Below, one piece after another: positions 16,537-58,720 of a stretch of DNA of 64,000 nucleotides. Every line of letters starts with the position of its first letter. The stretch's first letter is position 1. This DNA comes from Bugula neritina (lineage: Eukaryota > Animalia > Bryozoa): positions 3,586,722-3,650,721 of the forward strand of contig OZ037766.1 of the NCBI GenBank assembly GCA_964035545.1. The letters are read 5' to 3'. The notes below the pieces were generated by a model, which worked only from the letters and a program-made list of their open reading frames with translations, was not told the DNA's origin and made no database searches. Made by a program: the position numbers and the translations under genes.

Positions 16537-18015
16537 TCAAATTCTGTAAAGTAAATTTATTATGTTTTATCGGATATGAGGAAAATTTAGTCAGCAATTA
16601 AGAATTAAAGTGGCAATGCTCTGTGTTGGAGTATTTGAGATTAAGATTAAACAATTTGAATTAATATACTATTAAGTTGTAATACTTTGATGTGTTATAG
16701 TATAAATTATTACCAGTAATAATATATAGCTGAGAACTTTTAAATAGGTGTTATTTATTGCAACATTACAACTGAAAATGATTACAAATATTTTGATAAT
16801 TAATTATCATTGAATTTAATTTAAAGTTTAAATCAAACTAAAACTTTATATATACTTACCGAACTCCGTAAATGCAGTTACTTGAACCATGTATCTGGCA
16901 GCAAAGCTGATTGGTTGTGTTGCAGTCATGGGAATTGTATAAACATGGCCTTCCGATTGGCCCAAAATATTCATTTAATCTTGGGCATCTCCTTTGTGAC
17001 AGAGGTGGTGGAGGATCTGTAATTTATCAAAGTGATTAGCCAAACCATGTTCACCATCTAACTTAAAAGGACAAAAGATTTCTTAAAGTAAAAATAAAGT
17101 TGTGCCACAATCTGTTACTTATATTTCAAGAATAAAAAATATTCTTACTAAAAATTGAAAATTAATAAAAATACTATTGAAATTTTTATCTGACCATAGA
17201 ATAGATATTATTTTGTAATAGTCTGAAAACATAATTGTATTTAGTTCATTTTAGTAAAGCTGATTCCTTAACTAAAATTTAGTTAGCCCAATTTTTATGA
17301 AATATAATTTTTGTATAAAATGCCAAACTCAATGCTCCATTAAAACTAGAAAGCAAAACACTTTACTAAGTAACATAACCAAAGCTGTCTATTAACAACT
17401 GAATAACTAGCAAAGAATCTGATACTATTGGTGTGTGACTTACTGCAGGTGGATGTAGGACAACCCCTTCTAGTTCTGTATCCGAATTGACAGAAAACAT
17501 TGCTGTCAAATGGAGGGCATCCAGCTAAATTAACAAAATTACTTTCTGAATATATATAAATGGAATTTATTTTAAAACAATATTTTTCCTATAAAATGTC
17601 TATGTTATACATATAAACTAATACGATATTATACAGTTCATGAAAGTGTTAACAATAAATAAATGTTTTATTTAATATTCGAGAAATATTATGACAATTA
17701 GAACATTGCTACATAAAACCCCTTTGCAGTAGTATTACTCACCACATTGGCATGATGTAACACAACCACAGGCGTCGGTAATATAACCGTTTGGACAGTC
17801 ATAAGGAGTAGCATCAGGAGGGAGTAACCCACAGTCAGCGATGCTGCAGGATCGACAGGTGGTTGAAGCCTCGGCTGAAACATCAACACATAACACTGAA
17901 TTTATGCTACACAACAAATAAAGCAAAATTACAGGAAAGCTAGAAAATGGTTGTACTTACTGTATGTGAAAGTCAGTCCACACAAGACTAGAACAGTGAA
18001 TACTAAAGACTTCAT
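16537..18015 (-). CDS. secreted Cys-rich protein, gene A (signal peptide + 8-Cys IGFBP/antistasin-like + 4-Cys antistasin-like + 6-Cys WAP-like), ~143 aa
   Basis: Exons 18015-17961, 17874-17743, 17524-17444, 17016-16860, 16543-16537. Translation MKSLVFTVLVLCGLTFTY/TEASTTCRSCSIADCGLLPPDATPYDCPNGYITDACGCVTSCQC/AGCPPFDSNVFCQFGYRTRRGCPTSTC/NPPPPLSQRRCPRLNEYFGPIGRPCLYNSHDCNTTNQLCCQIHGSSNCIYGVR/I*. AATAAA (-) near 16396-16401. Confidence 0.88.
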
Positions 18016-18068
18016 CTTTGCAGTTTAGTAGCTTTTAGTGAACTGAGGTGAGTTAGGAAACAGTGAGG

Positions 18069-18076
18069 TTTATATA
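18069..18076 (-). promoter_or_regulatory. TATA box of gene A
   Basis: TATATAAA on - about 55 nt upstream of the ATG; identical in paralog B (34068-34075). Confidence 0.65.
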
Positions 18077-18822
18077 CAAGTTGGACGTCATGCTCCACAT
18101 ATTCAGGATATATGGTGAGATTCCACATGTGCTAATTATTTACTATACCTTTTCCTCATCACTTACTTAATGACTAAAATAACTAAACGAGTTTCCTTTT
18201 ATTTACTGCATGTGACGGAACTTGGCACTTTGAAATATTCTTTACCAAACAAATTATATTGCATAAATTAATTTTACAAGCATGCAGCTGCTAAAATATT
18301 TTTTAAACTGTTGCAACAAAAACAACTATAATACAATATTGTTGTGAAATCATTCATTTTGTAGGTTACCAAGTTAAAGATGATGCAATCTAAGACGTTG
18401 CCAGAATTCAGATGTTTCTAAGACAGATCAATAGCTGCACAGTATCAGTTGATATAGGAGTTCTAACTTTTTGCTTATCTAATCTCAGTTTGATAAGCAA
18501 TCTCGTATATTATATCATGAAATAATATAACAAACCTCACATATACTGCACTTGCTAATATTTTTGCAAATGTTGCAGAGATGAACAAATAACTGCAAAC
18601 AATTACAATAAATAAACTGTGAGAATATAGAAACTACTTTTATATTCTCACAAACGTGTGCTTAGTTTAATCTAAAAATCTTTTTTTCAATTGCCTTTTA
18701 CTTATTGGTGTCATGCCACTAAATCAGACTGCATTATTTGCTGTTACTGCAGTATATATACCTTTTTTAGTGCCAAATTATCTGCCTGTTACAATAACTA
18801 TAACGCCCCTATATGTAATACT

Positions 18823-18867
18823 TGGTGACTTTTCAAGTGTCATAATATGACACTTGAAAAGTCACCA
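18823..18867. repeat. perfect palindrome, 22-bp arms, 1-nt spacer
   Basis: TGGTGACTTTTCAAGTGTCATA-A-TATGACACTTGAAAAGTCACCA. Confidence 0.95.
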
Positions 18868-55345: not shown

Positions 55346-56229
55346 TTTAACTCTTCACTATTACCTCTTTATGTAAGAGTAATTTACTTTTGTCTAGCAG
55401 CATAGTAAAGGCAAATCACTCAACTTATTCTTGTGAAATTTACATTATGCCAACTCTTTGTTTAGCTCTTTACAAAATTTCCATTTTTTACATCAAATAT
55501 TTGCAATCTCGATAAAATGTGACAAGCTACACAGCTTCTTTTGCATAAAATAGTTTTAGCTAATTCCAGCATAAATCAGACATTCACTTTTTGTGTCATG
55601 TCTGGAAATATATTATTTATTCATTGAAGTGATAATTTTGACACCAACTAAAAAATAAACAAAAATGATTGCATTGTTTTGTTGACAAAACTTTGATGAT
55701 GTTGCCATATCTAGTTGAAAAAATCATGTTGCAAATAAATAAACATATTTTTTAGTGCAGCTTTGCCAGTAGGATGTTTAGCGCTGGTGAAGGTTTATAG
55801 TAACTAAATCAAGGATTTTGACACTCTAGAACTTGTTATATTTTCTTGCTAATTTTATTTTGCACGTAAAATTTCAAGGAATTTCTACAAAAGAAAACAA
55901 TTCTTACTTAAAATGCACCTTTTTTACTGTCTCTTTTAGCAATAATTAAGAAACTTTAAAAAAATGAAAGAACTATTACATCTCTGTGGAATTTTGAATA
56001 GTTTGTAACTTTGTTCATTTAGATTTTAGAGGCTAGTAATATTATTTTGCAGAAAACAAGTTTATATAATAACCAAGTCAAAACTTTGTAGAAAACTTCG
56101 ATATTTATCTAAAACAGAGAAAATAACTACAACTTTAATAACATATGAAATTAACAACCTCAGCCTTTAGTCCTATAAATTTTTGACCTTTGAAAACAGT
56201 ATAATTAAGATATCTGCTTTCAGCTAGCT

Positions 56230-56440
56230 TATATATCTTATATATATGTAGTATATATATATATATATATATATATATATATATGCTACATATATACTAT
56301 AGTATATATGTAGTATATATATATACTATAGTATATATGTAGTATATATATATATATATATATATATATATATATATATATATATATATATATATATATA
56401 TATATATATATATATATATATATACGTATGTATATATATA
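56230..56440. repeat. (TA)n microsatellite upstream of gene F
   Basis: Direct reading; paralog of 51157-51468. Confidence 0.93.
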
Positions 56441-56619
56441 AGTTTATGATAATATATACGTTTCAACAAAAGTGTGCTGAACATAAAGATTCTTTCTAAA
56501 CTGTGCACACCAGGCAATGTATTGCTCAATGCAAGCCAGTGACAACTCATTTAGTATATAAAGGGCTCTGCTTGGTGTGTAAATCATTCAACTCTATCTT
56601 CAACTCAAAGAAACTCATC

Positions 56620-58720
56620 ATGCAAGCTGTCTCTACGCTAGCTTTTGCTCTTCTTTGCTTCATATACTGTGTAGCAGCTAACTGTGAGTTTGTTGACTAT
56701 TTCAGATTTTGCTCAACTTTACAAAAGCAAATTCATTTTATTAAATTTTTTTAATTATACATATATACTGTTAAAAATAATTTAGGTTTTTTTTAGCATT
56801 TTAATTGACTGATTTAAGTTTTTTGTTCATTTTTGTCTTTCAAAGTTTTAATTAGTGTATAAGTAATAAAATTTGAGATTTATGCATTATAATTATACTG
56901 TTCTTTTAATTTAATAATTCTATAAATATAAATTGTAATATTTCATGGTACATTTTGGTGTTACTGCATTTATTATGTTGCTAGGTTGCACTAGAATTTA
57001 TTAGGATATAAAAAAGTATATATATTAATATTAGCTTATACTTTGTAGACGTAAAAAAGAAGAAACAATATTATTTAGAAAATAATATATTTCCAATAGT
57101 TTATAATTTTAGCTCCTGGTTACTTTTGCGAACCCTGCCCGGTTAGCAGATGTGGGCAGTTTGCACCAGGCCAGACTCCATATTCTTGTCCTAAAGGCTA
57201 TGTGAAGGATCATTGTGGGTGCGAGCTTCAGACATGTCAATGTGGTAAGTTTTCTAAACAATCTTGAACTTAAATTTCCTATATTCTAATTATATAACCT
57301 GTATGTTTCTATTCATAGGAAATCTATAATAAATGTTATAGTTTGTATAACTTAGCACTTTTGCAACCTTGTCTGCAAGCCCCACTTCATATTAGATTAG
57401 TCTATGAACTTATATATATTATTTCTTTTTCTACTTGCAGCTGAATGCCCATCATTTGACATGTCTGTCAAGTGTATATATGGGTACAGAACGCAACGAG
57501 GATGCCCAACTGAGTATTGCAGTAAGTTTTATTAGCTTTAACTTTTTCTGCTTTAATAATTAAAATACTCTAAAAGTAAAGCCATTTGAAAGTTTTCTAA
57601 GCGCAGCTCTCAGCTTTTTGCTTTTTTGAACTTGATAATACAATAATTATAGCAAACAGAAGCACATGTAAAATAATATATTAAAGTTATTTAATAATAG
57701 AAAATAATCATAACATGCTCTTCTCGGTAAATGTATAAATTTTAAAATGCACAGCCATTATAATTTACAATAAATTTGATATTAGACTACACTAGAACTT
57801 TTGGTACAAAAGATATAAAAAGCTAAAATTATATGAAGATCACCAGTATGAATGAAACATTTAAACTTTATTTCCACACAGACAACGGCCCACCCGCACC
57901 TTCTGCCAGATGTCCCAATAGCCAGGAGCCAACTGGAGCCTTAGGACCAGAGTGTATCTCTAAGAGTGAATGTCACTCCGGGGACCTCTGCTGTAAATCT
58001 TACAAAACTAATTCTATGAACTGCATGAGTGGCATGCGGTAGGTACAGCAAGTTACTACAACCTCAGCTTCATAATTTGGTTTTGCAGTCTATTTATTTT
58101 CTATACGAAATGGCAAACAACCTTTCTCAGACATCTGCATATTGGTCATTAACAAAAACATTCATGCTGATTCACGTAATGAGTTGTTTATGTAAAAACT
58201 AAGATTGTTATGTTATTACAAATTACAAAAATATTTTTAATTGATGTTTAATTCTATTTGCTGCTATAAATGATAGTTTATAAACAAATAGTTTCATGTT
58301 TAGAAATGTTTTATTCATAATTATTATCTTTTACTTAAAATCAAGTTCATCTATATTCATAATCTTTAACAGGATTTGCTAAACTCTCTGCATTTTAGTT
58401 GCTTTGCTTTAGTTGCAAATTATTAATATTTTAGCATAGATAAAGTAAACCCATTCTCTAACAGATGTGGGCTGCCTCCACCTGGACCCCAAACTGAAGG
58501 AGAAGAGTGTAGTCCAGACTTGCAGTGTCCAGTAGGATACATTTGCTGTCCTACCAACTTCGGCAGTCCTCTTGGCTCTATTTGCAGAAAGTAAGTATTT
58601 TTGCATAAAAACTCAACTGTTATTTACCCTTTAAATATACAGTTTACTAATCACACTGACCTCATTGCATAGCTATAGACAGTTTTAATGCTGCTTTGAA
58701 ATTATTTTAGAGATGACTGA
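56620..58720 (+). CDS. secreted Cys-rich protein, gene F (paralog of E), ~199 aa
   Basis: Exons 56620-56683, 57113-57244, 57441-57521, 57882-58038, 58435-58590, and a last exon 58711-58720 (acceptor uncertain). Same exon sizes and phases as E, with all Cys conserved. Confidence 0.87.

Follow-up and report, generated by a model that had tools for sequence, protein, structure and literature searches.

Within a 64,000-nucleotide stretch of Bugula neritina DNA (contig OZ037766.1; here, the window), we analyzed a cluster of six genes, A to F, that encode small cysteine-rich proteins with a secreted look. The cluster is real and well supported, and it is expressed, as judged from RNA evidence on gene B. 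Our favored reading, to which we give a probability of roughly 0.55, is that these genes belong to a bryozoan-restricted, secreted, disulfide-rich multigene family whose products would act as extracellular protective or matrix proteins of the protease inhibitor type. We infer the functional part by analogy with the mixed antistasin/WAP proteins of mollusc shell matrix and sea star adhesive.

The gene models were built from a six-frame scan for cysteine-rich, stop-free segments, with inspection of the flanks and coordinate-based tables of splice sites, in a window that is AT rich (GC content, about 0.25 to 0.43, mostly about 0.30). All six models are open, place one cysteine-rich module on each exon, and begin with an exon for a short hydrophobic leader that by inspection resembles a signal peptide (SP) (Table 1). 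The number of cysteines per module exon is always even (8 in the module called 8C, 4 in 4C, 6 in W, and 6 in the EGF-like module), so that each module could pair its cysteines alone. GT-AG borders are present in all 26 introns, of which 24 are in phase 1; the exceptions are the introns between W1 and W2 of genes E and F, which are in phase 2. The signal peptide exon ends in phase 1 in 6/6 genes, the last whole codon before the split being TAC in four of them (A, B, D, and E), CAC in C, and AAC in F. In gene C, another phase-1 donor may be present after position 38536. These models, phases, and architectures had been proposed in a sequence-only reading of the window, and every detail that we checked was correct, including the secreted look, the predominance of symmetric phase-1 module exons, and a start context common to A through D. 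This 9-mer context occurs four times in the window, precisely at the ATGs of genes A to D; its count is unremarkable, as 10 of 100 shuffles also gave four matches, and it is the placement that is informative. Genes A and B have it in common through duplication. TATA-like boxes lie upstream of A (within 18061-18090), B, D, E, and F. With hidden Markov models (HMMs) of each module, the modules of gene A scored 59 to 83 bits and the EGF modules of C and D 63 to 76 and 79 to 83 bits, respectively; the HMMs were built from these same window exons, so that own-exon scores are not independent.

RNA-derived contigs of run X1 (2016, labeled RNA-Seq of "symbiont metagenome") were mapped to gene B and support its predicted splice junctions. 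The contigs cover the exons of B, with a depth of zero in every intron, and with such precise skipping, they must derive from spliced RNA. Joints of the form CT..AC (GT..AG on the minus strand) were found at 30602/31016, 31096/31331, 31474/31699, 33150/33390, 33506/33613, and 33744/33954, and a further joint at about 31783/32359 matches the predicted 31782/32357 if one synonymous difference is allowed. In total, seven of the eight junctions were seen directly, and the eighth (exons 4 to 5), which joins the EGF part to the antistasin-like part, was seen through a 13-nt overhang, a loose end at 32480 that consists of the last bases of exon 4. Contig depth continues beyond the B stop codon, so that the dominant message terminates at that stop. 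Identity to the window is 88 to 99%; the contigs thus probably represent sibling lineages in addition to the window's own. Depth on the B exons is about 1000 to 3000, although contig depth is a poor measure of abundance.

Comparison of related copies points to constraint on the coding exons. Between genes E and F, the exons are 90 to 96% identical and the introns 71 to 80%, which argues that all five exons, including W2, are constrained and lends indirect support to the splicing of these two models. Over the module exons compared, gene B and its GenBank ortholog KAF6024266.1 differ at 8 of 272 aligned residues, with a dN/dS of 0.07 (dN, 0.013; dS, 0.19); B is under strong purifying selection. 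The corresponding ratio is 0.34 for gene A against its ortholog in GenBank locus L024, with changes mostly in the N-terminal part of 8C, and 0.37 for gene E against gene F.

To place the modules, database and profile searches were run exon by exon, and the full-length public relatives P0004, P0010, P0021, and P0023 stood in for the spliced proteins. Pfam Antistasin (PF02822) was the sole family matched repeatedly by 8C and 4C modules (22 of 31 pieces at E ≤ 1; best E, 9.8e-7). Two scores exceed its curated cutoff of 21.2 bits, namely, those of the first 4C exon of gene B (24.9) and of P0021:104-174 (23.7), and single 8C exons mostly fall below it. The antistasin framework has 6 cysteines per 26-residue repeat and 10 per inhibitor domain of about 55 residues. 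The 8C-4C unit departs from it, with 8 + 4 = 12 cysteines, a CGC motif, and an extra N-terminal C-x2-C-x4-C. Like leech antistasin, hirustasin, and bdellastasin, 8C/4C has the Cys-Pro-x-Gly-aromatic ... Gly-Cys motif region; unlike these inhibitors, with their usual 10 cysteines, it has the split 8 + 4 set and longer loops ahead of the conserved motif. In the Atlas's own model of the 8C-4C unit, the nearest structural neighbors were CRIM1 and antistasin clusters (TM, 0.40 to 0.47), which we treat as a lead. An IGFBP identity for the start of 8C, as put forward in the sequence-only reading, was rejected: none of the 31 pieces matches IGFBP (PF00219) in Pfam at E ≤ 1, the PDB profile search returned only chance matches, and the motif is CGC instead of GCGCC.

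Pfam WAP (PF00095; curated cutoff, 20.8 bits) was matched by 9 of 15 W modules at E ≤ 1 (best E, 2.9e-7), the best in the window being W2 of gene E at 17.6 bits, below the cutoff; the W modules of A and B gave no Pfam WAP match. All W modules have six cysteines in the spacing C-x12-13-C-x5-6-C-x5-6-CC-x8-11-C, short of the eight of a WAP domain, and relative to the WAP pattern, it is Cys 2 and Cys 7 that are absent by spacing. An AlphaFold model of W (pLDDT 68) contains a beta-hairpin, and in a comparison with 48,161 chains, WAP proteins took three of the top four places, with low Z scores: half-SLPI 4doq_D (Z 3.8; rmsd 2.1 over 37 residues), omwaprin 3ngg_B (Z 3.4), and nawaprin 1udk (Z 3.2). 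PDB profile searches with 8C and W gave chance matches only. The EGF modules have nine invariant columns, six of them cysteines, together with the C-x-C motif and EGF spacing; nine of ten match EGF-type Pfam families at subthreshold scores (best E, 6.8e-4), and their profile matches a fibrillin-1 EGF domain (E, 7.9e-4) and, weakly, betacellulin and TGF-alpha (E, 0.006 to 0.009). The antistasin and WAP affinities noted from the sequence thus hold, through the repeated Pfam matches and the structural neighbors of W. Given the weak or partial matches and the aberrant cysteine counts, we refer to the modules as antistasin-like and WAP-like and not as canonical members.

A profile of eleven 8C exons was then compared with 1.84 billion representative proteins and yielded 20 matches at E ≤ 0.001. 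Bugula neritina and Watersipora subatra account for two genuine matches each, and the other genuine matches are short unnamed fragments. As far as sequence-level matches go, the 8C module is therefore bryozoan restricted, in agreement with the lineage restriction proposed earlier. Four candidates (P0007, P0008, P0015, and P0017) were judged spurious, being repeat proteins in which a short Cys-Pro-x-Gly-Tyr stretch alone fits the profile. In a word-based, length-limited homolog search, the blanks of which carry little weight, P0004 found itself only, one alignment used as a query found P0010 and P0023 alone, and P0004:143-265 found none.

The family is not undescribed in the sense of never having been seen, since KAF6024266.1, KAF6024405.1, and XP_067951340.1 are already in databases under automatic names; we found no paper on them, and our literature searches gave nothing specific on antistasin, WAP, or EGF proteins of bryozoans. 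KAF6024266.1 (P0021; B. neritina, "hypothetical protein") is the ortholog of gene B, although its model has two EGF exons and lacks the second 4C exon, which its genome retains intact (L024 13204-13281). The window counterpart is included in the X1 contigs (joints 30602/31016 and 31096/31331), and the skip probably reflects either misannotation or a minor isoform. In the same GenBank locus, EGF1 and EGF2 of gene B correspond to one hybrid exon (unit, about 232 bp), so that EGF copy number differs between close species (3 versus 2 EGF exons). The locus also holds the gene A ortholog (19259-20259) and is 79 to 85% identical to the window in DNA; with the dS of B, this makes the window lineage a close relative of the GenBank assembly's lineage but not identical with it.

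More distant relatives repeat the same parts. KAF6024405.1 (P0010; B. neritina, hypothetical) is a paralog with SP-8C-4C, two canonical antistasin-like repeats, and a WAP domain that is Pfam significant at 26.6 bits. XP_067951340.1 (P0004; Watersipora subatra, "antistasin-like") reads SP-EGF-8C-4C-8C-4C-W, with one module per exon and all introns in phase 1, like gene B. The best identity pairs the first 8C-4C unit of B with the first Watersipora unit, and the second unit of B and that of A with the second; this weakly suggests, from sequence, an old B-like layout with two units and a loss of five exons in gene A. Elsewhere in the genome to which the window belongs, a second cluster at C6:14.00-14.08 Mb comprises nine further 8C-4C-W genes, and a related gene is found at C2:5.73 Mb. 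Nearly all copies of the window's EGF type in this genome lie within the window; two more exons of it were found outside the cluster, at C5:16923290-16924328 (42.6 and 36.1 bits).

Self-comparison of the window reveals tandem duplication. Two duplication units align in collinear blocks of 69 to 78% identity, which pair gene A with gene B and pseudo-C, a pseudogene fragment, with gene C. Within them, 16417-17905 aligns to 30003-31505 and 17941-19271 to 33934-35288. In gene B, a 2.4-kb segment (31505-33934) contains EGF1-3, 8C, and 4C, and its two ends correspond to the 86-nt intron 1 of gene A. What separates gene A from gene B is thus a single, cleanly bounded set of five phase-1 exons. Pseudo-C is supported by one EGF module match of 40.5 bits and by the alignment of 26593-28346 to 38146-39965 at 75%; in GenBank B. 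neritina, the corresponding EGF exon (L024 16283-16408) retains all six cysteines. Between A and pseudo-C lies a Ty3/Gypsy-type retroelement (about 21283-25739), missing from the paralogous unit, with an uninterrupted open reading frame for a 1293-aa gag-pol (21426-25307, plus strand). Genes E and F form a tandem pair of their own. A repeat of about 160 bp, 72 to 87% alike, forms arrays downstream of E (54490-55345) and F (59250-60790); these arrays belong to the duplicated E/F unit and grew further after F.

Two processes enlarged the family: tandem duplication of genes and the gain and loss of exons. The modules also have the marks of an exon-shuffled mosaic: their borders fall at phase-1 introns, exon number varies between relatives, and the same module occurs in varied contexts (EGF in B, C, and D; 8C-4C in A, B, E, F, the C6 cluster, and P0010). 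The exon shuffling first proposed from the sequence is borne out by the five-exon difference between A and B, by EGF exon number relative to the GenBank ortholog, and by the Watersipora layout. As the exons are in phase 1 and have even cysteine numbers, they could be duplicated, deleted, or moved without frame breaks or unpaired cysteines.

Table 1. Genes, exons, duplication units, and stop/donor-like sites in the window (positions are those of the window; SP, signal peptide)
Feature	Position(s)	Strand	Length	Layout or remarks
Gene A	16859-18015; stop, 16856-16858	-	142 aa	SP-8C-4C-W
Gene A exons	17961-18015 (SP); 17743-17874 (8C); 17444-17524 (4C); 16859-17016 (W)	-		
Gene B	30445-34014; stop, 30442-30444	-	343 aa	SP-EGF3-(8C-4C)2-W
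Gene B exons 1-4	33954-34014 (SP); 33613-33744, 33390-33506, 33022-33150 (EGF1-3)	-		
Gene B exons 5-9	32357-32479 (8C); 31699-31782 (4C); 31331-31474 (8C); 31016-31096 (4C); 30445-30602 (W)	-		
Gene C	38510-41982; with stop, from 38507	-	163 aa	SP-EGF3
Gene C exons	41916-41982 (SP); 40942-41070, 38819-38944, 38510-38676 (EGF1-3)	-		
Gene D	43607-45334; with stop, from 43604	-	198 aa	SP-EGF4
Gene D exons	45271-45334 (SP); 44789-44917, 44319-44447, 44072-44200, 43607-43749 (EGF1-4)	-		
Gene E	51879-53826; with stop, to 53829	+	187 aa	SP-8C-4C-W-W
Gene E exons	51879-51942 (SP); 52397-52528 (8C); 52709-52789 (4C); 53187-53343 (W1); 53700-53826 (W2)	+		
Gene F	56620-58591; with stop, to 58594	+	187 aa	SP-8C-4C-W-W
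Gene F exons	56620-56683; 57113-57244; 57441-57521; 57882-58038; 58465-58591	+		Same module order as E
Pseudo-C	27004-27375	-		Decayed copy of the last two EGF exons of C; cysteines lost; without promoter or first exons
Duplication unit 1	13127-28686			Gene A and pseudo-C; interrupted by Ty3/Gypsy-type retroelement
Duplication unit 2	28692-40205			Gene B and 3' half of gene C
E/F duplication	50129-55345 and 55344-60108		~5.2 kb	Tandem pair, ~76% identical
Stop/donor-like sites	16856-16861; 30442-30447; 53342-53349; 53825-53832; 58037-58044; 58590-58597			

Taken as a whole, the cluster is a bryozoan-specific version of a known type of secreted mosaic protein. Its domain types occur elsewhere, also in combination, and the system is not new in kind; the phrase "combinatorial secretion system" in the sequence-only reading overstates what is a tandem gene family, given that mixed antistasin/WAP proteins are known in molluscs, sea stars, and insects. 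The Lottia gigantea proteins Lotgi1|201804 and Lotgi1|239125 are secreted WAP plus antistasin proteins and major constituents of the shell matrix (PMC3374290), and the sea star footprint proteins Sfp8, Sfp3, and Sfp15 are of the WAP/antistasin type, with disulfide-based stability proposed (PMC9382459); both groups are abundant in extracellular material, and a protective or inhibitory role is presumed for them (PMC3374290, PMC9382459). Like them, the bryozoan chains unite WAP-type and antistasin-type cysteine-rich modules and look secreted. The Lottia and sea star proteins, however, are large (about 85 to 103 kDa for the Lottia pair) and carry many canonical 8-Cys WAP repeats, whereas the bryozoan proteins, at 142 to 343 aa, have one or two 6-Cys W modules, a divergent 8C + 4C region, and EGF modules in one subfamily. 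Sequence-level orthology to the Lottia and sea star proteins was not detected in the 8C profile and homolog searches.

Two further comparisons show the same mixture of likeness and difference. Type I crustins consist of a signal peptide, a cysteine-rich region (4 Cys), and a C-terminal 8-Cys WAP domain and form expanded families of small secreted proteins (PMC9680087). The order of parts and the family expansion are the same here, but the W module has 6 cysteines, an antistasin-like region with 12 cysteines precedes it, and the proteins lack a cationic character, which places them outside the type I crustins; no homology to crustins beyond the WAP-like fold was detected. BmSPI56 of Bombyx mori is a mixed Kunitz/antistasin/WAP inhibitor, and other silkworm inhibitors add EGF as a noninhibitor module (PMC3278429). 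It resembles the bryozoan family in joining antistasin and WAP units in one compound protein, but its partner modules are Kunitz and TSR, it belongs to another lineage, and no sequence relationship was detected.

The core unit of the family consists of a signal peptide, a 12-Cys antistasin-like region on two exons (8C + 4C), and a C-terminal WAP-like module with three predicted disulfides; one subfamily (gene B) is prefixed by one to three EGF-like modules, with the neighbors C and D being EGF-like only. On our favored reading, the products would act extracellularly, as a protective part of a secreted layer such as cuticle or skeleton matrix, adhesive, or mucus, where exposed loops on the disulfide framework may bind and block serine proteases, endogenous or microbial. 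Several observations weigh against this proposal. The 8C module resembles Antistasin only weakly and has extra cysteines, and no counterpart of the short loop that serves leech antistasin-type inhibitors as reactive site is recognizable. Modeled with AlphaFold, the 8C-4C unit reaches a pLDDT of 52, too poor for use, and VIA gave nothing with Z ≥ 2; this lack of a structural match is no evidence of a new fold. For the W model, Foldseek gave nothing significant (none below E 1) and the VIA Z scores were low. By its spacing, W is missing the disulfide by which elafin and SLPI hold their inhibitory loop in place, which makes inhibition by W doubtful. Net charges are near zero, at about -5 to +5, unlike those of cationic antimicrobials. 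The RNA support concerns gene B only, through contigs 88 to 99% identical to the window and a run whose RNA label is a guess.

The absence of conserved inhibitory-loop features would be expected if these were purely structural matrix or adhesive proteins (of cuticle, lightly calcified skeleton, or larval or rhizoid cement), with disulfides for stability and cross-linking. WAP/antistasin proteins are major in both the Lottia shell matrix (PMC3374290) and sea star footprints (PMC9382459), genes C and D have no inhibitor-like module, and the contig depth on the B exons suits a bulk secreted product, poor measure though it is. The proteins are, on the other hand, small and without the low-complexity, DOPA-type, or acidic repeats common in adhesives and biomineral proteins, and the strong purifying selection on B is compatible with either reading; we regard a purely structural role as somewhat unlikely, if clearly worth considering. 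A role as crustin-like antimicrobial peptides that act directly on microbes, perhaps shaping the symbiont community, would fit the layout parallel with type I crustins (PMC9680087), the structural nearness of W to omwaprin and nawaprin, which are noninhibitory waprins, and the expansion in tandem clusters, as in many immune effector families. We nevertheless think this quite improbable: the proteins are not strongly cationic, W is without one of the four WAP disulfides, and B is constrained, unlike an arms-race gene, even if A and E/F evolve faster at 0.34 to 0.37.

Signaling or ligand binding, with IGFBP-like binding modules or with EGF-like growth factor mimics or toxins, was suggested by the claimed IGFBP-like start of 8C and agrees with the weak betacellulin and TGF-alpha matches. 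The absence of IGFBP from the Pfam and PDB results, the generic nature of the EGF matches, and the lack of any indication of a venom apparatus or receptor-binding residues make it very improbable. That the models are chance open reading frames or dead pseudogenes is hardly credible, even though one genuine pseudogene fragment, pseudo-C, lies inside the cluster; exon-specific conservation with dN/dS below 1 and orthologs in two other bryozoan assemblies speak against it, and for gene B the spliced contigs refute it.

An extension of the favored reading, which we consider speculative and unlikely as it stands, is that the 8C-4C-W family and its EGF relatives form a bryozoan-specific toolkit and the main protein of the zooid cuticle, skeleton, or cement, with 8C as a fold variant of its own and changes in exon copy number between sibling species tuning the material. 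If so, the family would be a new and tractable model for a phylum-specific extracellular material that evolves through exon shuffling. Bryozoans are among the molecularly least-studied animal phyla, with seemingly no publications on their secreted cysteine-rich proteins, and the cluster is an unusually clean and datable case of exon shuffling in progress. Should the products be inhibitors, antimicrobials, or matrix parts, they would be relevant to biofouling, as Bugula is a major fouler, and to host-symbiont biology, and would bear on the repeated use of antistasin and WAP modules in marine extracellular materials.

Some further features of the genes and their surroundings were observed. Among 18 W exons examined, from the window, the C6 cluster (loci L013-L021), and GenBank B. 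neritina locus L024, 17 have the stop codon inside a phase-2 donor-like sequence (G/GTAAGT, G/GTGAGT, or G/GTAGGT). In E and F, the donor-like site is the predicted splice site between W1 and W2, and the Watersipora equivalent is stop free and spliced in the annotation. With a stop inside the donor-like site, the W exon would act as a phase 1-2 module in which an unspliced donor terminates the protein, and the site may be an alternative or a fossil donor.

A near-perfect 16-bp minisatellite (45627-47756; 132.6 copies, 99% match) lies about 290 bp upstream of the D start codon and could affect the D promoter or mark a recombination-prone spot. Upstream of gene E, 51220-51320 lies inside a (TA)n tract. 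No hammerhead ribozyme was found with Rfam at gathering scores in the whole window or at E ≤ 1 in 51100-51500, where AT repeats gave only chance matches. Two tRNA-like matches exceed the Rfam gathering score, at 50410-50479 (minus strand; 39.4 bits) and 7636-7707 (plus strand; 33.1 bits), and these may be tRNA genes or tRNA-derived SINEs.

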